This document shows positions 1 to 63,149 of a stretch of DNA of 64,000 nucleotides, piece by piece; position 1 is the first letter of the stretch; each line of letters opens with the position of its first letter. Below the pieces are notes generated by a model, which saw only the letters and a program-made list of their open reading frames with translations, had not been told where the DNA came from and made no database searches. The position numbers and the translations under genes are program-made. The stretch lies in assembly GCA_002269645.1 (NCBI GenBank), contig NIVC01002808.1, forward strand, positions 13,295-77,294. Reading direction: 5' to 3'. The DNA is from Macrostomum lignano (Eukaryota).

Positions 1-10288
<10,288 letters not shown>

Positions 10289-12229: not shown

Positions 12230-14266
12230 GTGATGGTGTTTCAGCAAGCATGGATGACGGCACAAAAGAGAGAAGACGCAGACAATCTTTAACGCGTCGC
12301 CTATACATGCAGCGCAGAAGGGCTTGCACGCCTATACATGCACGCCAATACATGCAGCGCAGACGGGCTGAGTCCGCTCTACGCATCGTAGATGGCGTAG
12401 AGCGGACGCTTCGGCTGCACCCTCTTCTCGGCCTTTTCGACGCACCGGCTAGAACGGATGCTTTCGGAATGAGACGCTGCGCGGCAAGGTAACGGTCTAC
12501 TAAAGCACATACGTAATTTGCCTTGCACCTTTGCTATTCGATAAAGGTGCTATATCGCGACCACGAGTCAGGGGGGTGGTGGAGGCCGGCGTTTCCCCGT
12601 TCGTGTTTCGCAGGCCATGCAGCGAGAAGCTGCAGAGCAGGGCTGCACCCAGACCTCTGTTCGCAACATGATGGATACCCTGACACTGGTCCAGGTCCGA
12701 CAAGAGACACATGCCGGTCCGAACACAGACACGCTCGGTGCGTTGGCTTTCGCCTCTGGCCGCGATAGCCGGTTTCGACTTCATCCGGTCCTGCCCTCCT
12801 TGCTACCTGCATCAGCTTTTGTCGGGGACGCTGAAGCGGATGCTGGTGCAAATGTTTCTCCCTACTTGGGACAAACCAGAGAAGGGCCCATCCAATTGTC
12901 TCAACCTGCACGGGCGCATCGACGACGTTGACGAGCGTTTGCGAGCAATTGTTGTGCCCAGGTGATCATGTGATCACTGCTCATTTCTCAGGTTTAGTCA
13001 AAATACTACCTAGACTTTCGCGGGGACTTGCCTCTCATTGAAGGTCTGTGCAGCGGCAGCAGGTACGGCCGTTGTCGGAGATTCGACACTTCCGTGGCCA
13101 CGAGTATGAGATGTGGTAATTTGCACTGGGTTTTCTGTCTCTGCGCGGCATCCTAGAGGAGACCCATTACCAGCATCTCATGCTGCTGTCGACCGCTTAA
13201 ACACTGGATCGTGTGCCCATTGCCGAACTGGCACACGTCAGACAGTCGCTTCTGTACTTTCACAGGAAGCTGCCTAGGCTGTACTCGCAGCGCGCACTGA
13301 CATACAATGCGCACCAGGCATAAATGCCCTTCACTAGTAATATTTTAGGCACTGGTTTTCAGAGAAGTATTTCAACCATGGATAGCCTGCTCGCCTGCTT
13401 TTCAGGTGTGCTGGCATACGGTGCAGCACGCAATTCTAGGCGGACCAGTGCATCTGCTTCTGCTATCCACAGGCCTATTCGAGACTATGCATTCGCGAAT
13501 TAAAACTCGATTGCACGGTACGCGGCATATATTGACGTCGAGTTGGTGCGCGCCATCGAGCTTGACGTCGCATCAGCACAGGTTTGCCAGTCACTAGAGC
13601 TGTATTGGACTAAAAAGTTTCTCGATTTTAAAAAGAACACTCATGTACTTTGCCTGGCTAAACAGGGAACCGTGGAACTCACTTTAATCTATTTTAATCT
13701 TTCAATTTAGAATCGCGGCCAACTCCAAGATGCCGGCCAGACTACGAAGGACCCGCGAGACAAAAACGAGGTAGTCGTCGTGCCCTCCCGGTTAGGACCG
13801 ATTGTGCTTCGACGACCTAGGACGATGACGACTGGGTGGAGAAGCGCGTCGCTGCCATCAGCCGTCTATGTTGAGGCGTGGCATCCCATCGCAGGACGAC
13901 GTCTGAACTCTGAAGACTTCATCCAGCTTCGTTTCTGTACAGGCGGATACTGAACCGATGGACTTCGTCTTCGGCCGCACACATAGTCTGGAATATGGTG
14001 GCAGCGACGTTGTTCGCGTACTTCTAGAAGTACTCCCGGTGGAGCCTAGCGTAGATCCCCTGCAGGAATTGGCCAACGTTAGGTCGGACTTTGGGGAACG
14101 TGGATGCCGCAACGCAAGTTTTCGGCTTCTGCGGACGGACCCCTTTGCCGACCTGCAGGCATTTGGCCCCCCAGTGCCCTTCAACGTCAACACAATCGTT
14201 GGTGTTTGCGCCGTCAGTCCCACGGCCATCGCTCTGCTGCCTCACTTGCAGTTAGGCTTCTCATGA
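12230..14266 (+). pseudogene. CMC/EnSpm-type DDE transposase pseudogene (intron-containing, with stops, frameshifts and probable internal deletion)
   Basis: Family motifs appear in the expected order: LGLFDAPAR; SPLAAIAGFDFIRSCPPCYLHQLLSG (C/DxxH); RIDDVDERLRAIVVP; RPLSEIRHFRGHEYEMW*; LRGILGETHYQHLMLL; LYSQRALTYNAHQ; GGPV...LFETMHSRIKTRLHGTR; FVFGRTHSL. In-frame TAA stops occur near 13117 and 13198. Confidence 0.78.
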
Positions 14267-19100: not shown

Positions 19101-19789
19101 AAGGGGTAGGGTTCTTTATTTTTTATCATACTGTTCAATTTCTAACTGTTCGAATGTGTACCATATTCGAATACGTTTACAGTTGAAAAATTATTACAAA
19201 TACTGTAAAAATTAGGTTATACGTTAGGTTTGTTAAATTGTCTGCTATCTTATCCTTGACACTATCCTTGATCTGCACAGTGTCATTTGTCCACTTACAG
19301 GTCATACTGCATGGTTCTCAATTTGTTGTTTAGGGTCATTTGTCCAGCTCGTGTCATTCCTTGATCTGCATAGTGTCATAGCAGCAGCCATGCATGCAAG
19401 GACTTTAGAACTGTATTGTAGATGTGGATCCTGTGTACGAGCTATCAATTCGTTAATAGTAAATATGTGTACTTTTCGATTCAAGCACATAAATCGAGTA
19501 CACTTTGGAAGGCAAATTGTTTTTTACAGCTTTGATACATTCATGATACATGTATACTAGCATTCGCTAATGCATTTGCCATTTAAGAAGAGAAAAATGC
19601 GTAATAAACGTTAACACGTTTGTCAGATTTTGATTTAAATGGTTAAAATTTTAAGTAGCAATTAGTGCGTTACTACTTTTAGTACTATAGTATGCGGTAA
19701 ATCTTCGTGAAAACTCGAAGCCTTATCCAGGGGTTCCGTGTGCAAAATTTCACATCTCCGAAAAGCAGCCTCCGTCACAACTCCGACAC

Positions 19790-22700
19790 TTCATATTTCC
19801 GACACAATTTATATCTCCGACACTTCATATCTCCGACATTTCATATCTCCACACTTCATATCTCCACACTTCATATCTCCACACTTCATATCTCCGACAT
19901 TTCATATCTCCGACACTTCATATCTCCGACATTTCATATCTCCGACATTTCATATCTCCGACACTTCATATCTCCGACACTTCATATCTCCACACTTCAT
20001 ATCTCCACACTTCATATCTCCGACACTTATTTCCAACACTTCATATCTCCAACACTTCATATCTCCAACACTTCATATCTCCAACACTTCATATCTCCAA
20101 CACTTCATATCTCCGACATTTCATATCTCCGACACTTCATATCTCCGACATTTCATATCTCCGACATTTCATATCTCCGACACTTCATATCTCCGACATT
20201 TCATATCTCCGACATTTCATATCTCCGACACTTCATATCTCCGACATTTCATATCTCCGACACTTCATATCTCCGACATTTCATATCTCCGACACTTCAT
20301 ATCTCCGACATTTCATATCTCCGACACTTCATATCTCCGACACTTCATATCTCCGACATTTCATATCTCCGACATTTCATATCTCCGACACTTCATATCT
20401 CCGACATTTCATATCTCCGACATTTCATATCTCCGACACTTCATATCTCCGACACTTCATATCTCCGACATTTCATATCTCCGACACTTCATATCTCCGA
20501 CATTTCATATCTCCGACATTTCATATCTCCGACACTTCATATCTCCGACATTTCATATCTCCGACACTTCATATCTCCGACACTTCATATCTCCGACATT
20601 TCATATCTCCGACACTTCATATCTCCGACACTTCATATCTCCACACTTCATATCTCCGACATTTCATATCTCCGACATTTCATATCTCCGACACTTCATA
20701 TCTCCGACATTTCATATCTCCGACACTTCATATCTCCGACATTTCATATCTCCGACACTTCATATCTCCGACATTTCATATCTCCGACACTTCATATCTC
20801 CGACATTTCATATCTCCGACACTTCATATCTCCGACATTTCATATCTCCGACACTTCATATCTCCGACATTTCATATCTCCGACACTTCATATCTCCGAC
20901 ACTTCATATCTCCACACTTCATATCTCCACACTTCATATCTCCGACACTTATTTCCAACACTTCATATCTCCAACACTTCACATCTCCAACACTTCATAT
21001 CTCCAACACTTCATATCTCCAACACTTCATATCTCCGACATTTCATATCTCCGACACTTCATATCTCCGACATTTCATATCTCCGACATTTCATATCTCC
21101 GACACTTCATATCTCCGACATTTCATATCTCCGACATTTCATATCTCCGACACTTCATATCTCCGACATTTCATATCTCCGACATTTCATATCTCCGACA
21201 TTTCATATCTCCGACACTTCATATCTCCGCACTTCATATCTCCGACATTTCATATCTCCGACATTTCATATCTCCGACACTTCATATCTCCGAAACTTCA
21301 TATCTCCGACATTTCATATCTCCGACACTTCATATCTCCGACATTTCATATCTCCGACACTTCATATCTCCGACATTTCATATCTCCGACATTTCATATC
21401 TCCGACACTTCATATCTCCGACATTTCATATCTCCGACACTTCATATCTCCGACATTTCATATCTCCGACACTTCATATCTCCGACATTTCATATCTCCG
21501 ACACTTCATATCTCCGACACTTCATATCTCCGACATTTCATATCTCCGACATTTCATATCTCCGACACTTCATATCTCCGACATTTCATATCTCCGACAC
21601 TTCATATCTCCGACACTTCATATCTCCGACACTTCATATCTCCGACATTTCATATCTCCGACACTTCATATCTCCGACATTTCATATCTCCGACATTTCA
21701 TATCTCCGACACTTCATATCTCCGACATTTCATATCTCCGACACTTCATATCTCCGACACTTCATATCTCCGACATTTCATATCTCCGACACTTCATATC
21801 TCCGACACTTCATATCTCCACACTTCATATCTCCGACATTTCATATCTCCGACATTTCATATCTCCGACACTTCATATCTCCGACATTTCATATCTCCGA
21901 CACTTCATATCTCCGACATTTCATATCTCCGACACTTCATATCTCCGACATTTCATATCTCCGACACTTCATATCTCCGACATTTCATATCTCCGACACT
22001 TCATATCTCCGACATTTCATATCTCCGACACTTCATATCTCCGACATTTCATATCTCCGACACTTCATATCTCCGACACTTCATATCTCCACACTTCATA
22101 TCTCCACACTTCATATCTCCGACACTTATTTCCAACACTTCATATCTCCAACACTTCATATCTCCAACACTTCATATCTCCAACACTTCATATCTCCAAC
22201 ACTTCATATCTCCGACATTTCATATCTCCGACACTTCATATCTCCGACATTTCATATCTCCGACATTTCATATCTCCGACACTTCATATCTCCGACATTT
22301 CATATCTCCGACATTTCATATCTCCGACACTTCATATCTCCGACATTTCATATCTCCGACATTTCATATCTCCGACATTTCATATCTCCGACACTTCATA
22401 TCTCCGACATTTCATATCTCCGACACTTCATATCTCCGACACTTCATATCTCCGACACTTCATATCTCCGCACTTCATATCTCCGACATTTCATATCTCC
22501 GACATTTCATATCTCCGACACTTCATATCTCCGAAACTTCATATTTCTCCGACACTTCATATCTCCGACATTTCATATCTCCGACACTTCATATCTCCGA
22601 AACTTCATGTCTCCACACTTCATATCTCCGACACTTCATATCTCCGACATTTCATATCTCCGACATTTCATATCTCCGACACTTCATATCTCCGACACTT

Positions 22701-22937
22701 CATATCTCCGACACTTCATATCTCCGACACTTCATATCTCCGACACTTCATATCTCCGACACTTCATATCTCCGACACTTCATATCTCCGACACTTCATA
22801 TCTCCGACACTTCATATCTCCGACACTTCATATCTCCGACACTTCATATCTCCGACACTTCATATCTCCGACACTTCATATCTCCGACACTTCATATCTC
22901 CGACACTTCATATCTCCGACACTTCATATCTCCGAAA
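19790..22937. repeat. 16-bp satellite (ACA[C/T]TTCATATCTCCG)n, ~195 units
   Basis: Direct reading; source of the >1000-aa spurious ORFs. Confidence 0.98.
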
Positions 22938-23639
22938 CTTCAATCCGCAACAAGTTCGCCATTAGAAAAAGTTAAGTAATAAATTCAGTAATATCTCCCC
23001 TGAACCCGGGAAGTCTGAGCTGTTGCTCAAATCGTACCTCCACAGCTATGCGGTATGCAACTTTCTGTCTGTGAGCACAGCTGCCCTCTGTGCAAGCGCT
23101 GTGATAAAATTCCCCTTTTTTCCCCAAAGAATTTTAGCGTCAAGTTTACTAAAGCAAGTGTGCTTTGCATTGCCTTGCGCTTGCTGTGCTCCTGTCAGCT
23201 CTACAAGGAGTTGAATACTTCCTGTCAGTCCTATTTTCAACTACCGTAGCTGCTGGTTCAACCCCTATTGTGGACTGATTCTAATAGTTTTCTTGCATTT
23301 CACGTTGTGTATTGATTCTTCAGCAGGTGTCCCTGTACAGTGACTGGCCCTGTTCTCTCTGTAGTGTAAGGACTGGATTTCCCTTTAAGCTTTTTTATGA
23401 GCAATTATACACACGAGGTGCTGTGCAACTCACAGCTCTGCTACCTGGTGCCGCTCCTTTTGCCTTTACACTTTGAAAGCATTCTAAAATGGACTACTTT
23501 TTAAAGTTATTATAATGAGAATATTAAAATTAATATATTAATCATCTCTTTAACAGTATATTAAAGCGAATATTAAAAGGAAAATCTAACTCTTCTTCAA
23601 ATTTGTCCTACGCTTTTCGACCTGTAAATTAAACCCTTC

Positions 23640-37436: not shown

Positions 37437-38269
37437 GTCACCACGTGTTCAAACCCTGAATTCCAGTTCTGTACAGCTTAATGTACGCGGCTTGATCCAC
37501 TATAATGTCTGCATTTTTATCCGCACCAAGTTGACCTTAGCGCGCACAGTTCCGCAATGCTGTACATTCATAGCATGCAGCCAATTGACAAATACTTGCT
37601 GCCTTCACAGCCCCTGTGCCAGACTTTGCTGTTAGTTCTATCTGTGTTTAGCTTGTAACCTTGTGAATTCCTCACCGCTGTAGCGGTGATTACTGTCCCC
37701 CTTGTTGCTACAGATATGAGAAATAGAGACAAGCAATCCTCAGCGGGGGTGACAAAATTCATTTTGTAAAAACATTTCCTATTTTTCCTTGTCTGCATTC
37801 CTAATTCGCCTGCTTCTGGCCGTTGTGTTGCTGCAGAATCTTCTTCAATCCAGCGATGTCGAGCCCCCCTACTGGCCAGCAACACAGCCGGGGGTCCGGG
37901 GGAGTCGCGGCAGCAGCGGCGGCTCTCCACGGGAGCTCGCAAGGATCTGGCTGGGACCGGCCGTGGGAGCCGCGGCCGGTTGCCTGAAATTGGAGGGGAT
38001 TTTCGGGGCCTCGTTAGAGGGGATCAGCGGCTCCTGACAGATGCTTTCAGCGCAGCCATTCCTGCGCGAGTGGCAACGCAGAGGCGAGCTTGGGGAGGCT
38101 GGGATGGAGGAGCCAATTTGTGCAACTGACGCAGTTCATGGGGATCGTGTCAATCAAGCGGTGGGGCTGGGGAAGGCAGAGGGATTTCCGGGAAACGATG
38201 GGAACTGGGGGGAGACAAGTGCGCGAGAGGCTCATCAGCTGGCCGACATTACTGCCTTAATAAACTTGG

Positions 38270-39854
<1,585 letters not shown>

Positions 39855-40361
39855 CACTGCTTCAGTCCCTTATTTCGAGCTCCCGTCATTGAAAAACAAG
39901 CTGGGACCAGCAGCAGCAGCAGCAACCCAATTAACGCGATAACCAAAGCAGAAAAAGCAACTGAAGCAAATTGAAGTGCCTTGCGAATTTTGGCCATTTT
40001 CGGCACAGCCATAGGCAGCATATAAGCGATGTGAAGTGGCCACTTGAAAAGTCCGAATGCTTCATGACCCGCAGCTCTGAGCGGCGTGGTTAGGAAATGT
40101 TGAGCCTACTCGAATTAAGAGAAGGCAGCAGCGCCTCATTCTGGCTGGCAACTACCAGAAATTGCCGTTCACCACTGTTGCGGCTTTTTATTAATAAAAA
40201 TCTGAAAACTGAAGCTTCTGTCATGCAGGTAAGGCTACTCCAGTTACGTAATCTACACGTGCGTCTGCCCGCTGTGGGGAGTGCCGCACTTATTTGTATT
40301 TGTTTACCTGAGCAACTCTTCAGTTAATTGTTTAGCTATCAGTTTGTGCGTCTAAATACTC

Positions 40362-51113: not shown

Positions 51114-53798
51114 ATGCGGCCGTGGGTACTAATCCTGCCATTACTGCTTCAACTCGCCCGCGTCAGGGCCCAGTGCAACCCGGCCAGCTCCGTGCCCGAC
51201 CCTCGAGTTGGCGTCGTTGACTACCCGGGCACGGCTGGCGACAGCTGCTACTTTCCCTTCACCTACGGCGGCAGGGTGTTCCACGAGTGCGACGGGCCTT
51301 ACTGTGACGGCTCCTTCTGCGGCTACTGGTGCGCCACCAGCTGCAACTACCCCACCGACTACTCGGCCTGGCGCTTCTGCCGCTTTATGGTGGCCGACCT
51401 GGCCAAGCCGAACTGCGCCGCTCTGGCCAACATGAGCTCCTCGACCGAGATTGAAGTCTACGGCGGCAGCGGCTCTGGCACAGCCTGCTACTTTCCGTTC
51501 ATGCACGACAATGTCTGCTACGATGACTGCATTGATACTGACGGCAGCGGCCAGTTTTGGTGCTCAACCACGGATGTCATGTACCACGTAGCTACCAACA
51601 AGCGCTTCTGTCGTGCCACCAGGAAGGGCCTGAGGGATTCTAGCTGTTCCAGACTTAACGCTACCGCCCCCGTGTACCTTCCACAGCAGATTGGCAACTA
51701 CTCAATAGCTCTGGTGCAAACGGATCCTACAGGTAACTGCACCTTCCCTTTCTACTACAAAGAGAAATGCTACGATGACTGCACGACGGTGGATGCTCAA
51801 GCTTGGGACCTGCCCTGGTGCTTAACCGAGAAATACTACCAGCCCAACAAGCGAACGAGGGTCTGCCCGCACTATCGCAAGTATAAGGAGGTCACCGGCC
51901 TCGCACTTGACTGGGGATTCTTCTACATCCGAGAGCACACCAGCTGCAGCTCCGGTGGCGCCGCTTGCAACTCGTCCTGGTCTCCCGCAGGTTCCGCTGT
52001 GCCAACCACATCAGCTGGATCAAAACGGATGGCGCTGCAGTCGTCAGCTGAGCCAATTGAGGTCATGCCTCAGCCAAATGGCCTCTTCATCTTAAAGTTG
52101 CCATTGAGTTGCACCGACTCCAACTGGAGAAGCTTAAGCATCGATGGCAGCGAGGTCGGCCTGGAGCCGATTTCGAACGAGCGCGAGTTCTGGGACCTCC
52201 GTCCCACTGGCACGCCAGGTGCGTTCACAGTGCAGTCGATGCGAAACAGCACGCGCGGAATGTATCTGTCTCACAGCTCGCTGAGCGGTACTCCGGTTTT
52301 AAGCCTGTCGGCTACCAGCGCCACCCAGTGGCGATTCGAAGCGCTTTCAGGACTGTCTAAGGCCACGCTGGGTCTGCCGTGCGAGAATCCGACCCGGCTG
52401 AACGGATCTTGGTGTGCCTGGAGTGAGTACTTTGTGTCCGGGAGCGTTTCGACCAGAAATCGAACGTGCGCCTGCCCGCCAGCAATTCGCGGCCTGCCAT
52501 GCGATGGGAACAGTACGGAGGTTGCCTCTGTGGTCAACGGCAGCTGGTGCGGTTGGTCCGCTTGGACCGAGATCAGCGATGGCTACAACACGAGATCTCG
52601 ATTGTGCAACTGTAGCGCGCCGAAAAATGGCGGTGCAGACTGTCCAGGCGCGGGCAACGAGACTGGCCTGCGAGTGAACGGGTCGTGGTGCGATTGGTCC
52701 GCGTTCACTGTCGACCCTGACGGCTGGGGATTTAGGAGTCGTTACTGCAACTGCAGCGCGCCGCAGTACGGAGGTTTGGACTGCGTCGGACCAAGCAACG
52801 ATACAGGAGTGGCTGTTAACGGCAGCTGGTGTGCCTGGTCTTCATTCTCTCCCGCAGATAGCTCTGGACTGAGCTCCCGAACCCGAGTTTGTAACTGCAG
52901 CGCTTCGCAGTACGGAGGCTCAGAGTGCGTTGGAGCCAGTAACGAGACCGGGCCTCAAGTAAACGGGTCCTGGTGCAACTGGTCGCCATTCAATGTTACA
53001 CACGGTCAAGGAACTCGAAGAAGATCTTGCAACTGCAGAGCGCCACAGTTCGGAGGTGCTGCTTGTCCAGGAAGCAGTATCGAGACAGGCCCCGCAGTCA
53101 ATGGCACTTGGTGCAGCTGGTCGCCTTTCACTGTGAGTGGCTCTCTAGGCGTCAGAACGCGAGCCTGCAACTGCAGTGCGCCGCAGTTTGGCGGCTCGAA
53201 TTGCTCCGGACTAGGCAGAGAAGAGGGACCGGCCGTGAACGGCACCTGGTGTGCATGGTCGGCCTATTCAAGTAACGGAACTCATGAAACTCGACGACGA
53301 GTCTGCAACTGCAGCGCGCCGCAGTTCGGCGGATCTGACTGTCCGGGCAGAGGCGTCGAGGCGAGCAGCATCGTTTCCGGCGGCTGGTGCAGCTGGTCAG
53401 CCTGGTCTGTCTCTGGCACCGGCCGGAGCAGCAGAAATCGATCATGCGCCTGTCCCTCAGCCAGTAGGCTGGGCGCCGGATGCAGCGGGCCGGACACTGA
53501 AACTGAAAGCGGCGGTGGCGGCGGCAGCAGCGGACGGGCGCATCCAGCCGAGCCGGGCGAGCCAGGCGCGGCCTTTAACAGCCTGGACTCATACTCCCGC
53601 CTCGTGGCCTGGTCAGCGGTCATCTGCCTGGCCATGCTGACCAGCACACTGACCGGCCTGGGCCTCATGCTCAACCGGATTGTCCAGTCCAGACGCTCTG
53701 TTGGCTCCAGCACCGAGGCGTCCCAGCAGATCAGACCGAAACGGCCGACACCACCGATATTCTCTGACTACGGATCTCACAGTGCCTACCCGGGATGA
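51114..53798 (+). CDS. Intronless type I membrane protein (894 aa): signal peptide, 3 fibronectin type II domains, putative beta-trefoil, 8 TSP1-like repeats, TM helix, short tail
   Basis: Uninterrupted 2685-bp ORF with hydrophobic MRPWVLILPLLLQLARVRA. Three C-x-FPF-x-Y...C...WC.T...C modules (51246-51866). Eight NG(S/T)WCxWS...RxRxCxC...C units (52401-53510). TM LVAWSAVICLAMLTSTLTGLGLML (~53601-53675). Confidence 0.9.
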   Translation: MRPWVLILPLLLQLARVRAQCNPASSVPDPRVGVVDYPGTAGDSCYFPFTYGGRVFHECDGPYCDGSFCGYWCATSCNYPTDYSAWRFCRFMVADLAKPNCAALANMSSSTEIEVYGGSGSGTACYFPFMHDNVCYDDCIDTDGSGQFWCSTTDVMYHVATNKRFCRATRKGLRDSSCSRLNATAPVYLPQQIGNYSIALVQTDPTGNCTFPFYYKEKCYDDCTTVDAQAWDLPWCLTEKYYQPNKRTRVCPHYRKYKEVTGLALDWGFFYIREHTSCSSGGAACNSSWSPAGSAVPTTSAGSKRMALQSSAEPIEVMPQPNGLFILKLPLSCTDSNWRSLSIDGSEVGLEPISNEREFWDLRPTGTPGAFTVQSMRNSTRGMYLSHSSLSGTPVLSLSATSATQWRFEALSGLSKATLGLPCENPTRLNGSWCAWSEYFVSGSVSTRNRTCACPPAIRGLPCDGNSTEVASVVNGSWCGWSAWTEISDGYNTRSRLCNCSAPKNGGADCPGAGNETGLRVNGSWCDWSAFTVDPDGWGFRSRYCNCSAPQYGGLDCVGPSNDTGVAVNGSWCAWSSFSPADSSGLSSRTRVCNCSASQYGGSECVGASNETGPQVNGSWCNWSPFNVTHGQGTRRRSCNCRAPQFGGAACPGSSIETGPAVNGTWCSWSPFTVSGSLGVRTRACNCSAPQFGGSNCSGLGREEGPAVNGTWCAWSAYSSNGTHETRRRVCNCSAPQFGGSDCPGRGVEASSIVSGGWCSWSAWSVSGTGRSSRNRSCACPSASRLGAGCSGPDTETESGGGGGSSGRAHPAEPGEPGAAFNSLDSYSRLVAWSAVICLAMLTSTLTGLGLMLNRIVQSRRSVGSSTEASQQIRPKRPTPPIFSDYGSHSAYPG

Positions 53799-54990: not shown

Positions 54991-57900
54991 TCAGGGAGCC
55001 GGCTTGGCTGACTGCTGCCGCCGCCGCCTCTCCAACCGCTGCTGCACCAGGTCATCCGCCAGCAGCAGCAGCCCCGCGAATCCGATCAGAGCCGACAGGA
55101 AGATGATGGAGGCGTTCCAGGAGCCGGTCCGGTCGAACAAATCGCCTGGAGAGGAATTTCAAGTATCAATTCGAGGGTTCGCGGCGATAAAAGCGTTCGG
55201 CACTGGTTAGTGAGGCTGGCTTTGGCGCTCTGGGCCAGCCTGAATGGAATTAAATACTTCTAGTGCGAGCTGAGGGTCTGCTTGCCAGTCTGCTTGTACT
55301 GAATATTCTGCTGTGTGTACCCCAATAACCTCACAATGCCTCTCTAGTCCATAGTACTCCAATCCAAATTCACGTATCTTCATTGCTTCCCCAATTTCCA
55401 TCTATCCCATCCCATCCTATCTCATCCTATTCAATCCCATCCCATCCCATCCCAACCTATCCCATCTCATCCCATGTCATCCCCATCCCATTCCATCTCA
55501 CCCCATCCCATCCCATCCCATCCTATCCTATCCCATCCCATCCCATCCCATCCCATCCCATCCCATCCTATCCTATCCCATCCCATCCCATCCCATCCCA
55601 TCCCATCCCATCCAACTCCATCCTATCATATCCTCTCATATCCCATCCGATCCCCATCCCCAGCAGCAGTAACGCACCCAGCAGCACGGGCACGATCAGC
55701 ATGATTATGCTCTCGATGATGCCCAGCATCCCGTAGGTCAAGCCCAGGTTCTCAATCCCGAACGTCTCCACCAGCATTGGCGCCAGGTTGGGAACCAGGC
55801 CGCCAGCCAGTAGGCCCTCCAGCAGAGCGTAGGCCAGGGCAGCGGCCGGTGTCGGGTGCAACAGGAGGCACCAGAGCGCACCCTGGGCGATCGTGAGGGT
55901 CAGCAGCAGCAGCTGCCGCCTGAACAGCTGCCTGTCAGCCAGGAAGCCGATGCTAATCCGAGTGACGAGGTCTGTGATGCCCTGGTACTGCAGCAGCCGG
56001 GTGTACTCAGTGGCCGTCATGCCGATGTTCTTGCCGTGCTGCGGCAGCACCATGAAGTTGAACGGCATCGCCTGCGCGGCCAGCGACAGGCTGAACAGCA
56101 GCACCCAGAAGCGGGGCCGGCGCATCAGGCGGCCGCTCTCTTTGAAGCTCCGGCGGAGTCGGGTGACGAAGTTTCCCTGAAAGACGTCTTCCGGGGTATT
56201 CGCTGGGCCGCCGCCGGAGTCAAACAAGACGCTGACGTCTCCACAGGACGCCAGGAAGATCGCCGGGGCGTGCGGGGCCGGGGCGCCGCGGGACGCATCT
56301 TCCGCTGCCTCTGCGGACGTGGCGTTCGTCGAGGTAGCTCGACGTCGACAGCTGCGCCCGGCTGCGGACTTGGCCGAGCCGGACACAAAAAGAATGTTAT
56401 CGGCGCTGGTGCAGTAGTGGTGCGGGTCACCGTTGGTTTGTTGCTTGGCTTTGCTCTTGGAGGTGCAGCTTGCACAAGCCTCTGGCTGGCTCTTGCTATC
56501 GTTGTCCATTTCACTTTCTACATCCTTTTCCGTGCTCTGCTTTTTAGTCTTCATTGCGTTTTCTTCCACCACCTCTTCAGCATTCTTCTCCGCATTCTTC
56601 TCTGCATTCTTCTCCGCATTCTTCTCCGCATTCTTCTCTGCATTCTTCTCTGCACTCTTCTCCGCATTCTTCTCCGCATTCTTCTTCGCATTCTTCTTCG
56701 CATTCTTATTCGCATTCTTCTCCGCATTCTTCTCTGCACTCTTCTCCGCATTCTTCTCTGCACTCTTCTCCGCATTCTTCTCTGCACTCTTCTCCGCATT
56801 CTTCTCCGCATTCTCAGCCTCTTCGCCGATCAGCGCCTCCGCCTCAGGGGCAGCTCCCTGGTCGCTGGCGGGCACAAACGGGCGCATGACAGCGGCAGCC
56901 ACGGCCACGTTGAGCATGATTGCGCCCCAGATCAGCATGCAGCCGCGGAAGGTGTACTGCTCAATTAGATAGTTCATCAACGGCGGCATGCACAGAGCGC
57001 CCATGGAGCAGCCGGAGAACGTGATGCCCATAGCGACCGTCCGGCGCTGCAGAAAGTAGTAGCTGATGATCAGCACAGTCGGCGGGTGCGTCATGGACAG
57101 CCCGATGCCCACCAGCAGCCCGATGGTGAAGTACAGCACCTCCAGCGATTCGGCAAAGTAGGACAGGGAGAAACCTAAGCCGAGGAAGCAGCTGCCGATG
57201 GACACGACCAGACGGACTGAGAAGCGCCTGGCCAGGGCCATTGTGACTGGCGCTGGCGGGTTCGTGGAGGAAGACGGATTAGTGGAGAATCATAGGGTTA
57301 AACTGGAGCTCATCTGCTCATCTTCTGACTTACTAAGAATGAGAAACACCAGAAACATGAAGCTCAAAATCCATGAGGTGTCCCGCTTGCTCCTGTTGTA
57401 GTGCTCCGACACGCTGGCCAGCAGCAGGCCGGTGCTTCGGACATTGCCGATCACCAGGATGTGCAGGAATGACCCAGCTGAAATGTGCATTCGGTCACCT
57501 GCTCGCTTAACTGGCAGTCTGACACTCACTGACTGACAGGCTGGCACAACCTGACACTCACTGACTGACAAGTTGGCACAACCTGACACTCACTGACTGA
57601 CAGGCTGGCACAACCTGACACTCACTGACTGACAAGTTGGCACAACCTGACACTCACTGACTGACAAGCTGGCACAACCTGACACTCACTGGCTGACAAG
57701 CTGACACAACTTGACACTCTCTGACTGACAAGCTGGCACAACCTGACACTCACTGACTGACAAGCTGGCACAACCTGACACTCACTGACTGACAAGCTGA
57801 CACAACCTGACACTCACTGACTGACAAGCTGGCACAACCTGACACTCACTGACTGACAAGCTGGCACAACCTGACACTCACTGGCTGACAAGCTGACACA

Positions 57901-60310: not shown

Positions 60311-60474
60311 CCAGGAATTTTGAGCAACGAGTATGTAGAAAGAAAAATTCAAAGACTACTACTTAACAGAATAAGTACTATATGTAGCGCTTTTATCGCA
60401 TTTTACTCGTATAGTGGCTCCCTTAAAATTGGCATGACGCTTACTTTTACGTTTGAAATTGTGTATCTTTTATG

Positions 60475-62745
60475 TTTGACATGGTGGCTCTTTTATGTTC
60501 TACATGGTGGCTCTTTAATGTTCTACATGGTGGCTCTTTGATGTTTGATTCGGAGTTTTTTAATGTCTGACATGGTGTCACTTTAATGTTTGACATTGTG
60601 GCTCTTTTATGTTTGACATGGTGGCTCTTAGTGTTTGACATGGTGGCTCTATAATGTTAGACATGGTGGCTCCATAATGTTAGACATGGTGGCTCTTTAA
60701 TGTTCGACATGGTGGCTCTTTAATGTTAGACATGTTGGCTATTAAATTTTTGACATGGTGGCTCTTTAATGTTCGACATAGTGGTCCTTTTATGCTTGAA
60801 ATGGTGGCTCTTTAATATTTGACATGGTGGCTCTTTTATGTTTGGCATGATGGCTCTTTGATGTTTGATATAGAGTCACGAATATACTTGACATGGTGAC
60901 TCGTTAATGTTAGACATGGTGGCTCTTTAATGTTTGACATGGTGGCTCTTTAATGTTCGACATGGTATATCTATAATGTTAGACATGGTGGCTTTTTAAT
61001 GTTCGACATGGTGCCTCTTTAATATTTGACATGGTGGTCCTTTTATGTTCTACACGGTGGCTCTTTATGTTTGACATGATGGCTCTTTAATGTTTTACAT
61101 GGAGTCACATATATGTTGGACATGGTGGCTCTTTAATGTTCGACATGGTGGATCTATAATGTTTGACATGGTGGCTTTTTAATGTTCGACATGGTGGCTC
61201 TTTAATGTTAGACATGGTGGCTCTTTAATGTTTGACATGGTGGCTCTTTTAATTTTTGACATGGTGCTCTTTTATGTTTGACATGATGGCTCTTTTATGT
61301 TTGACATGATGGCTCTTTTATGTTAGACATGGACTCTTTTATGTTAGACATGGTGTCATGACATGGTACTTTACATGGTGACTCTTATGTTAGACATGGT
61401 GGCTCTTTAATGTTTGACATGGTGGCTCTTTAATGTTAGACATGGTGGCTCTTTAATGTTTGACATGGTGGCTCTTTAATATTTGACATGGTGGCTCTTT
61501 AATGTTTGACATGGTGGCTCTTTAATGTTAGACATGGTGCTCTTTAATGTTTGACATGGTGGCTCTTTAATGTTAGACATGGTGGCTCTTTAATGTTCGA
61601 CATGGTGGCTCTTTAATGTTAGACATGGTGGTTCTTTAATGTTCGACATGGTGGCTCTTTAATGTTAGACATGGTGGTTCTTTAATGTTCGACATGGTGG
61701 CTCTTAATGTTAGACATGGTGGTTCTTTAATGTTCGACATGGTGGCTCTTATGTTGACATGGTGGCTCTTTATGTTTGACATGGTGGCTCTATATGTTGA
61801 CATGGTGGCTCTTTACTGTTTTGACATGGTGGCTCTTTTATGTTTGACATGGTGGCTCTTTAATGTTTGACATGGTGGCTCTTTTATGTTTGACATGGTG
61901 GCTCTTTTATGTTTGACATGGTGGCTCTTTAATGTTCGACATGGTGGCTCTTTAGTGTTTGACATGGTGGCTCTTTAAGGTTTAACATGGATTCACGAAT
62001 ATACTTGACATGGTGACTCGTTAATGTTAGACATGGTGGCACCCTAGTGTAATGAATGCTCTTTAATGTTTGAAATGGTGGCTCTATATTGTTCGACATG
62101 GTGGTTCTTTATGTTCGACATGGTGGCTCTTTTATGCTTGACATGGTGGCTCTTTACTTTTTGACATGGAGTCACATATATGTTTGACATGGTGGCTTTT
62201 TAATGTCAGACATGGTGGCTCTTTAATGTTCGACATGGTGGTACTTTTATGCTTGACATGGTGGCTCTATAATGTTCGACATGGTGGTTCTTTTATGTTC
62301 GACATGGTGGCTCTTTTATGCTTGACATGGTCGCTCTTTACTTTTTGACATGGAGTCACATATATGTTTGACATGGTGGCTCTTTTATGTTGGACATGGT
62401 GGCTCTTTTATGTTGGACATGGTGGCTCTTTAGTGTTTGACATGGTGGCTCTTTTATGTTTGACATGGATTCACGAATATACTTGACATGGTGACTCGAT
62501 AATGTTAGACATGGTGGCTCTTTAATGTTTGACCTGGTGGCACCCTAGTGTAATGATGGCTCTTTAATGTTTGAAATGGTGGCTCTTTAATATTTGACAT
62601 GGTGGCTCTTTAATGTTCGACATGGTGGCTCTATAATGTTAGACATGGTGGCTCTTTAATGTTCGACATGGTGGCTCTTTAATGTTAGACATGGTGGCTC
62701 TTTAATGTTAGACATGGTGGATCTTTTATGTTTGACATGATGGCT
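60475..62745. repeat. ~23-bp satellite GACATGGTGGCTCTTTAATGTT(A/T/C), ~95 units
   Basis: Direct reading. Confidence 0.97.
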
Positions 62746-63149
62746 CTTTAATGTTTTACATTGTGCTTTTTGTTTTTAGCATTTAAAATGTTTTTATTTA
62801 GGGTTTTTTTAATAAAAAAATCTTTTTGCACTACTAAGCTTTGAACCCAGGTCGCTACATAAGCAGTCCAATCTGTTTGCATCGAGGCTTTCTCTTTTCA
62901 ATTGGCGAACATGATTTGTGGCCCTTATAATTCAATGCTTACAGCAAGTTGGTTAGAGTAAAAAGTTATGACATAATCAATTTCTTAGTCAGCCAGTATC
63001 AGTGTCAATTTAAGTTAGCAATATTGTTACGCAATTTCAATCAAGTTGTGTGTGCATTTCTTTGGCACTGTTTTCAACTTGTTGTGATGCAATCTTTATC
63101 AGAATTGAAATTCAGTCAGTCAGTTTTTTCTCTAGCATTCTTACAATGC

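Follow-up and report, generated by a model that had tools for sequence, protein, structure and literature searches.

The Macrostomum lignano gene Mlig014498 is, with a probability of roughly 0.6, a genuine gene for a lineage-restricted type I membrane glycoprotein whose role would lie in matrix- or glycan-binding adhesion. The gene is located in a stretch of 64,000 nucleotides (contig NIVC01002808.1 of assembly GCA_002269645.1, forward strand, positions 13,295 to 77,294), referred to below as the window. Its predicted product consists of a signal peptide, three fibronectin type II (FN2) modules, a middle domain of 176 residues, a rod of eight repeats resembling thrombospondin type 1 repeats (TSRs), a single transmembrane helix, and a short tail. 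This layout is that of a type I surface protein, as the initial annotation of the window had proposed, and the protein contains 28 N-glycosylation sequons (N-x-S/T), with two or three of them in most of the TSR-like repeats. The predicted features were as follows:

51114..53798, plus strand: complete coding sequence of Mlig014498, 894 codons and a stop codon (open reading frame list and GenBank annotation)
51114..51173, plus strand: putative signal peptide, about amino acids 1-19/20, MRPWVLILPLLLQLARVRA followed by QC (by sequence reading: a hydrophobic core, then V-R-A)
51246..51380, plus strand: FN2 module 1, amino acids 45-89, with an extra cysteine-rich insert, C64/C69/C77 (Pfam fn2; purpose-built FN2 profile, independent E value 4e-8; PDB matches to fibronectin, MMP-9, and PDC-109)
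51486..51611, plus strand: FN2 module 2, amino acids 125-166, with an extra Cys135 and without the terminal W-G (purpose-built profile, independent E value 2.5e-12; Pfam fn2)
51738..51866, plus strand: FN2 module 3, amino acids 209-251 (the best Pfam fn2 stretch, profile positions 1-42 of 42; purpose-built profile, independent E value 1.9e-9; alignment with MMP-9)
51870..52397, plus strand: middle domain, amino acids 253-428, 176 residues, with four conserved cysteines at 278, 285, 333, and 423 (profile searches and AlphaFold2)
52398..53525, plus strand: eight tandem short TSR-like repeats, amino acids 429-804 (repeat parsing, Pfam TSP_1, TSP-1 TSR chains, and AlphaFold2)
53526..53600, plus strand: Gly/Pro-rich linker and juxtamembrane segment, amino acids 805-829, of which FNSLDSYSRLVAW is partly conserved in the paralogue (pairwise alignment)
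53601..53675, plus strand: predicted single transmembrane helix, about amino acids 830-854 (the only place where a 19-residue Kyte-Doolittle window reached up to 1.98)
53676..53795, plus strand: predicted cytoplasmic tail, 40 amino acids, not conserved (paralogue tail, stop codon in a further genomic copy, and motif search)

Positions 51114..53798 on the plus strand formed one unbroken open reading frame (ORF) of 894 amino acids from ATG to stop, exactly the span given in the initial annotation. The annotated gene span equals the length of the coding sequence, which is therefore intronless. The GC content of the ORF was 60% (68% at third codon positions), and that of the remainder of the window ranged from 30 to 60%. 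Tandem arrays accounted for 51 Tandem Repeats Finder (TRF) rows in the window; unlike most of the window, the ORF contained none of them, and it is therefore not a tandem-repeat artefact. The product had already been deposited in GenBank and UniProt as an uncharacterised "hypothetical protein" and was 99% identical to PAA56683.1 (M. lignano Mlig014498g1), and an identical product of 894 amino acids is annotated on two contigs of GCA_002269645.1. Mlig014498 is a model of the Mlig_3_7 gene set, which was derived from RNA-seq data and a de novo transcriptome with StringTie, TACO, and TBONE, with novel transcripts below 0.5 reads per kilobase per million mapped reads dropped (PMC5730564). Transcription of the gene is implied by the way in which this set was built, so that the objection of an untranscribed ORF, raised in advance by the initial annotation, does not apply.

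A tblastn search of the 64-kb window for a second copy or a paralogue returned only the gene itself. Elsewhere in the genome, a third copy was present at L001 8009-10693 (contig NIVC01002590.1), its coding sequence being 98.7% identical and its flanks 93-98% identical; this copy may represent either an allele or one of the duplicates that a redundant, neopolyploid assembly would be expected to contain. The coding sequences of Mlig014498 and the third copy differed at 36 sites, 21 synonymous and 15 non-synonymous by the Nei-Gojobori method (dS, 0.034; dN, 0.0074; omega, 0.22), and the deficit of non-synonymous changes relative to neutrality had a binomial P value of 9e-6. The paralogue search that had been recommended yielded one M. 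lignano paralogue, Mlig009063 (g1 and g2), with 969 amino acids and 45% identity to the Mlig014498 product. All 24 cysteines of the head (amino acids 21-423) were kept in this paralogue. The number of ectodomain cysteines in the Mlig014498 product was even (56), with the 57th cysteine of the whole protein lying inside the transmembrane helix.

FN2 head and middle domain

The N-terminal leader is probably a signal peptide, judging from its composition, and the paralogue likewise begins with a hydrophobic leader. Pfam fn2 (PF00040) matched the protein in three stretches with a score of 39.4 bits against a cutoff of 22.2. A purpose-built hidden Markov model (HMM), trained on 68 foreign FN2 modules (from fish, reptile, frog, nemertean, and environmental proteins), matched all three modules end to end (positions 1-40 of 40), so that the three FN2 calls of the initial annotation withstood HMM scoring by both models. 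Sequence matches in the PDB covered amino acids 32-258 and included MMP-9 (1l6j; E value, 2.5e-9), fibronectin (1e88; E value, 9e-9), and MMP-2 (1eak and 1ck7), with further matches of the FN2 region to PDC-109 (1h8p and 1pdc), factor XII, and SEL1L. The cysteine quartets of the modules were C45/C59/C73/C89, C125/C139/C150/C166, and C209/C223/C236/C251, and the CxFPF motif and the WC aromatic core were present in each of the three. Module 3 was the most conserved part between the paralogues (68% identity). Modules 2 and 3 carried an additional cysteine in the motif V/K-C-Y-D-D-C, which is probably paired with an upstream cysteine, C101 for module 2 and C178 for module 3; all of the cysteines of module 2 were kept in the paralogue. 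The linkers between the modules were 35-42 residues long.

HMMER was used to compare a profile of the whole head with 1.84 billion representative proteins, and the best 150 of 405 matches were listed. Among these best 150, the head was matched over its full extent only by the gene's own copy and by the single M. lignano paralogue, and for every other protein, it was the FN2 region that gave the best match. The middle domain, when compared with the best 150 of the 405 matches by a local HMM, was matched in P0001 (99% identical to the Mlig014498 product) and P0002 (the paralogue) only, with no other relative among them. Word-indexed homology searches with the middle domain or with six TSRs found nothing and missed even P0001; they were given no weight. 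Scans of metagenomes with back-translated conserved peptides gave pattern matches only and no relatives.

The middle domain was 48% identical between the paralogues. At an E value of ≤10, it matched no Pfam family in Mlig014498 (including PF00652, PF14200, and the CysR family PF24562), and a profile search of the PDB at the same threshold gave 0 chains. In the paralogue, the middle domain gave a single glycoside-hydrolase match at chance level (E value, 0.028), in one of three members. An AlphaFold2 model of the domain, made from a three-sequence alignment, had a mean predicted local distance difference test score (pLDDT) of 29.7 and was unusable; strands and essentially no helix appeared in it, a weak hint that the domain is probably all-beta. 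The initial annotation had called this domain beta-trefoil-like. In a self-comparison with hhalign, one off-diagonal match was obtained, between domain residues 50-83 and 140-173, with an E value of 0.11. Comparisons with ricin B1, ricin B2, and the MRC1 CysR domain scored 10.0-13.5, and the maxima from shuffled columns were 16-18. These baits were confirmed by Pfam as ricin-type or CysR domains (the MRC1 fragment showed CysR, fn2, and Lectin_C). The test is a weak one, because ricin B1 and MRC1 CysR, both genuine trefoils, scored no more than 17.7 against each other. Three segments could be discerned by eye, with EFW and TQWRF recalling the QxW motif, which is a lead only. With neither a Pfam nor a PDB match, with a pLDDT of 29.7, and with scores no better than shuffles in a low-power comparison, the beta-trefoil call found no support here.

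TSR-like rod, membrane helix, and tail

The rod was parsed into eight repeats of 46-47 amino acids with four cysteines each and the consensus V-N-G-S-W-C-x-W-S-x-[WFY]...R-x-R-x-C-N-C-S-A-P-x-x-G-G-x-x-C-x-G, in which W-C-x-W-S, R-x-R, C-x-C, G, and C-x-G were invariant. Pfam TSP_1 (PF00090) scored 25.5 bits against a cutoff of 21.6, with only two stretches passing individually. In phmmer searches, amino acids 475-700 matched the TSR crystal chains of thrombospondin-1 (3r6b, 1lsl, and 7yyk; E values, 3e-10 to 3.5e-8), and other parts of the array matched the TSRs of UNC5, C8, and BAI1. All eight repeats of P0001 matched a profile of the family's own repeats (E values, 1e-14 to 1e-22); because this profile was built from the same repeats, the matches show their likeness to one another and not their identity as TSRs. 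The elements W-C-x-W-S-x-[W/F/Y] and R-x-R, which by sequence correspond to the strands of the Trp-Arg ladder, were invariant or nearly so in the repeats of both paralogues. A WxxW motif of the C-mannosylation type was present in each of the eight.

Relative to TSP-1, the canonical cysteines C3 and C4 were retained, and C1 and C2 of the CSxTCG hairpin and the C-terminal pair C5 and C6 were missing; a search of the repeats for the motif C-x-x-[ST]-C-x-x-G was negative. Each repeat had gained two cysteines, one directly after the first Trp and one at C3+2, and the position of these residues suggests a disulfide bond between strands A and B. In a Foldseek comparison of an AlphaFold2 two-repeat model with the PDB, TSR3-4 of Sema5A, TSR3 of BAI1, complement TSRs, and pleiotrophin were among the top ten; both the model and the ranking are consistent with a TSR fold and are not proof of it. 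From their sequence pattern, the repeats are best described as an unusual four-cysteine variant form of the TSR. The eight thrombospondin type 1 domains of the initial annotation were thus upheld in that there are eight similar repeats and TSP_1 scores above its cutoff, although only two stretches pass individually and the six-cysteine pattern is not present.

The paralogue had one transmembrane helix at the equivalent position. The tail of the Mlig014498 product does contain the RPKRPTPP motif and the two tyrosines to which attention had been drawn, but neither is conserved: all copies of the paralogue end in ...LLCRQAS(T/A)GSAF, about 9 residues past the membrane, and in the 98.7%-identical L001 copy, a CAG-to-TAG change at codon 871 (Q871*) removes the last 24 residues including RPKRPTPP. 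YxxPhi, NPxY, and acidic-dileucine signals were sought in the tail, and none was found. The suggestion of a receptor with a signalling tail is accordingly weak, and the protein would not signal or be sorted through its own tail.

Distribution, known architectures, and proposed role

Searches of the literature found no description of an architecture combining three FN2 modules, the middle domain, a TSR rod, and a transmembrane helix. Together with the restriction of whole-head matches among the best 150 of 405 to two M. lignano proteins, this agrees with the earlier view that the architecture belongs to no described family. A Pfam scan of the 104 nearest FN2 representatives found fn2 in all of them, with PAN, Sushi, matrixin/hemopexin, VWA, EGF, and Kringle domains as partners, and TSP_1 besides fn2 in one, P0015. 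This protein of 807 amino acids is secreted, and four canonical six-cysteine TSRs are interspersed among its seven FN2 modules; it has neither a transmembrane helix nor the middle domain. It matched only through generic FN2 and TSR modules and is therefore not an orthologue. The statement that no protein combines FN2 with TSRs was too strong in view of P0015; the combination is rare and not unique, and the particular layout described here was met nowhere else in the searches. P0015 (members P0151-P0155) derives from environmental and SRA-derived contigs of about 2.5 kb (Logan and JGI), which are transcripts of uncultured eukaryotes.

The closest FN2-rich proteins included nemertean and prawn (crustacean) ones. 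Planarian VAL proteins have been known to contain FN2 since a 2012 report (PMC3435950), and flatworm FN2 is also on record in PMC6211748, so that the assertion that FN2 is mainly a chordate module did not hold. The VAL-FN2 fusions of Dugesia and Schmidtea share with Mlig014498 the presence of FN2 in proteins of free-living flatworms, but they are secreted SCP/TAPS proteins with one C-terminal FN2 module, no TSRs, and no transmembrane helix; they document FN2 shuffling in Platyhelminthes (PMC3435950).

The mannose-receptor family (MRC1, MRC2/Endo180, PLA2R1, and LY75) is likewise composed of type I proteins, in which an N-terminal head holds FN2 and one further domain and is followed by an extended array of a repeated extracellular module, one transmembrane helix, and a short tail. 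In that family, a CysR trefoil is followed by a single FN2 module (collagen-binding in MRC1 and Endo180), 8-10 C-type lectin domains, the membrane helix, and a tail whose endocytic motifs are tyrosine-based or dihydrophobic, whereas the M. lignano protein has three FN2 modules placed first, no Lectin_C or CysR match, TSRs as its array, and an unconserved tail free of endocytic motifs. The likeness is an analogy of layout, with no sequence relationship beyond FN2. The gelatinases MMP-2 and MMP-9 also have three tandem FN2 modules and, with the gelatin-binding region of fibronectin, gave the best PDB matches. The M. lignano protein differs from all three in having no peptidase M10, hemopexin, or FN1 domain and in the extra cysteines of its FN2 modules, which are strung on linkers of 35-42 residues, whereas those of the gelatinases are packed inside the catalytic domain.

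In the TSR-stalk proteins (THSD7A/B, THSD1, semaphorin-5, UNC5, BAI/ADGRB, and TRAP/MIC2), as in the M. lignano protein, TSRs lie between a ligand-binding region and an anchor, a placement familiar from the THSD and TRAP architectures, and the sequence and fold matches of the M. lignano repeats were to the TSRs of TSP-1, UNC5, BAI1, and Sema5A. None of the TSR-stalk proteins is known to have FN2 or the middle domain. Six cysteines and the CSxTCG hairpin characterise their TSRs, whereas the M. lignano repeats have four cysteines (WC...CxC...C), are about 10 residues shorter, and have no POFUT2 motif; the tails of the TRAP family have a conserved acidic/Trp motor-binding motif, in contrast to the unconserved M. 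lignano tail. An apicomplexan TRAP/MIC2-like protein, with TSRs, a transmembrane helix, a short tail, and an intronless gene, was considered and rejected, the gene being that of M. lignano.

FN2 modules bind ligands in gelatinases, in fibronectin, in the mannose-receptor family (Endo180 and MRC1), and in BSP proteins, and TSRs are known for binding glycosaminoglycans. The ligand roles of FN2 are established knowledge cited in PMC6211748 and PMC3435950. The Mlig014498 product would enter the secretory pathway through its signal peptide and be anchored by its single transmembrane helix. A head of three FN2 modules and the 176-residue domain is carried on the rod of eight shortened, sequon-rich TSRs. 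By analogy with the proteins named above, the FN2 modules would bind a collagen-like, other matrix, or phosphorylcholine-type ligand. The rod would set the head tens of nanometres off the membrane, and sulfated glycans may be bound by the rod as well. With a tail that appears dispensable and is unconserved, the protein would act as a passive anchor, an adhesion molecule, or a co-receptor. The gene most probably arose by shuffling of extracellular modules in the macrostomid lineage, followed by one duplication.

Several points weigh against this reading. In the head, FN2 modules 2 and 3 are without the C-terminal Trp-Gly of the FN2 consensus, and classical gelatin binding is therefore not guaranteed. 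A weak relative of the middle domain (E value of about 1e-7 to 1e-3) could be among the head-profile matches beyond the best 150 of 405, and Macrostomum species other than M. lignano may be absent from the protein collections. In the rod, the repeats are without four of the six canonical TSR cysteines, and the POFUT2 O-fucosylation consensus was looked for in them and was absent. The two-repeat model, based on an alignment of 12 repeat pairs, was of medium confidence (pLDDT, 68.3), and the TSR matches found with it by Foldseek were not significant (best E value, 0.16). The case for transcription of Mlig014498 is an indirect one, drawn from the construction of the gene set and not from inspected reads. 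Finally, the identifiers Mlig014498 and Mlig009063 did not occur in the full texts searched or in the supplements of a set of M. lignano studies.

Other readings of the protein were compared with that of an adhesive surface glycoprotein. It could be an endocytic, scavenger, or pattern-recognition receptor like those of the mannose-receptor family, with a divergent R-type lectin as its middle domain and TSRs in place of C-type lectin domains; it would then capture and internalise collagen fragments or microbial glycans. The logic of the layout is similar (FN2, another head domain, a repeat array, a transmembrane helix, and a short tail). In addition, the middle domain has the size of a beta-trefoil (about 130-175 amino acids) and shows only strands in its low-confidence model, and the three segments seen by eye end in aromatic motifs (EFW and TQWRF), again as a lead only. 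This reading is nevertheless quite unlikely, given that the middle domain had no Pfam or PDB profile match at an E value of ≤10, that its hhalign scores against trefoils (10-13.5) stayed under the shuffled maxima (16-18), and that its internal repeat was not significant (E value, 0.11). The order of the domains is also different, the FN2 modules preceding the putative trefoil, and C-type lectin domains are lacking; the tail, free of endocytic signals, has almost disappeared from the paralogue and is cut short in one genomic copy. A small chance of the same order attaches to a reproductive or gamete-recognition surface protein (on sperm, on the egg, or lining the antrum), whose fast evolution under sexual selection would explain why orthologues are undetectable. 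The gene was confined to M. lignano in all of the collections searched and its paralogues are down to 45% identity, FN2 proteins of the BSP/PDC-109 type (PDB matches 1h8p and 1pdc) coat sperm, and PMC7336406 reports reproduction-related genes of Macrostomum as rapidly evolving. The dN/dS ratio of 0.22, however, indicates purifying and not diversifying selection on the recent timescale, and the gene identifiers were absent from the supplements of reproduction-related RNA-seq and germline/neoblast studies, a weak point in that transcript identifiers may differ.

TSR proteins are very often matrix components, and the transmembrane helix might serve biosynthesis only, in a precursor whose ectodomain is shed to give a soluble or matrix-deposited FN2-TSR glycoprotein of the extracellular matrix or mucus. 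Such a precursor would be in keeping with the unconserved tail and with SGGGGGSSGRAHPAEPGEPG, a Gly/Pro-rich and probably flexible linker that separates the last TSR from the membrane, as well as with the secretion of P0015, the sole other protein found with FN2 and TSRs, which has no transmembrane helix. Shedding is distinctly improbable, in that the helix and the juxtamembrane segment are kept in both paralogues at 40% identity, which suggests that the anchor matters, and in that no furin-type site (RxxR) was seen by eye in amino acids 805-829. A non-functional sequence is practically excluded, be it an ORF arisen by chance, a pseudogene copy in decay, or an artefact of annotating a highly repetitive and partly duplicated genome. 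The window is full of arrays that give long spurious ORFs (e.g., 19707-22979), one copy of the gene has a premature stop, and the ORF of the paralogue locus L004 is broken in the repeat array. Against this stand a 2.7-kb ORF in which a signal peptide, three FN2 modules, eight TSRs, and a transmembrane helix follow one another in coherent order, the freedom of this ORF from tandem arrays, an omega of 0.22 (P = 9e-6), and membership in an RNA-seq-derived gene set, as well as the even number of ectodomain cysteines (56), the retention of 24 of 24 head cysteines in the paralogue, and the fact that the stop in the third copy removes just the last 24 residues of the tail.

A bolder extension of the preferred reading as an adhesive surface glycoprotein is that the middle domain has a fold not seen before or is a lectin that has diverged strongly, forming a novel recognition head with the FN2 modules, that the WCxWS...CxC repeats are a new TSR subclass with a disulfide bond from strand A to strand B, and that the two genes represent a hitherto undescribed family of flatworm receptors for matrix or glycans, mounted on rods, functionally analogous to the mannose-receptor family and independent of it in origin. 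This extension is speculative and, taken as a whole, unlikely.

Invertebrate genomes hold thousands of such lineage-restricted mosaic ectodomain proteins; the individual modules are already known, and the shuffling of extracellular modules is common among metazoans. The novelty lies in this combination of modules, the orphan domain limited to two M. lignano loci, and the short four-cysteine TSR. The description of the gene as the best candidate for an undescribed system in the window was overstated, since it is one lineage-specific mosaic gene and no system, and no long-standing question is opened or settled by it. If the preferred reading is correct, M. lignano, a transgenic, RNA interference-tractable model for regeneration, adhesion, and sexual selection, built its own surface receptor from old modules (FN2 and TSR) and one domain without detectable relatives, and the gene would be a clean case of lineage-specific module shuffling. 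It would also add to the evidence against FN2 as a vertebrate invention, and the compact four-cysteine TSR is of possible interest for structural studies of C-mannosylation and of the Trp-Arg ladder fold.

Paralogue models and surroundings of the gene

The models of the paralogue differed in their TSR arrays, in that the repeat number varied between P0002, P0160, and P0161, and P0002 contained a corrupted repeat, "RLYRFQLPWQFTDSL." At L004 6001-9260 (Mlig009063g2), the genomic ORF ended at 8670, within the repeat array, and the annotated model resumed at 8805; this interruption could reflect instability of the repeat array, a genuine intron, or an error of assembly or annotation. The annotated N terminus at L004 had an extension of 58 amino acids before the Met of the signal peptide, resembling a translated 5' untranslated region. 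The UniRef name "Protein-tyrosine-phosphatase" given to the paralogue (P0002, A0A1I8FYL0) was rejected, as Pfam found fn2 only. Other members of the P0002 cluster were named "Fibronectin type-II domain-containing protein" or were fused models, and P0162 of the same cluster, a "C2H2-type domain-containing protein" of 2735 amino acids, is probably a fused gene model.

The window as a whole (positions 1-64000) contained dozens of unrelated tandem arrays with periods of 4-136 bp and up to about 400 copies, many with extreme GC skew. Examples were found at 19781-22942, 38270-39853, 60444-62765, 1282-2170, and 8600-9403. Long spurious ORFs resulted from such arrays, including 19707-22979 (1090 amino acids) and 38041-39942 (633 amino acids). 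The neighbouring ORF at 55568-57241 on the minus strand encoded a fragment of a Major Facilitator Superfamily (MFS) transporter (Pfam MFS_1, 96.9 bits) and contained a 12-bp tandem repeat at 56580-56814 (about 20 copies), read as an (AEKN)n low-complexity loop insertion; the annotated gene at this locus is a multi-exon model of 601 amino acids. An ATCCC microsatellite of about 51 copies occupied 55404-55660, and a plus-strand ORF at 55383-55736, translated as (HPIPS)n, overlaps the 3' end, and hence the C-terminal part, of the minus-strand MFS ORF.

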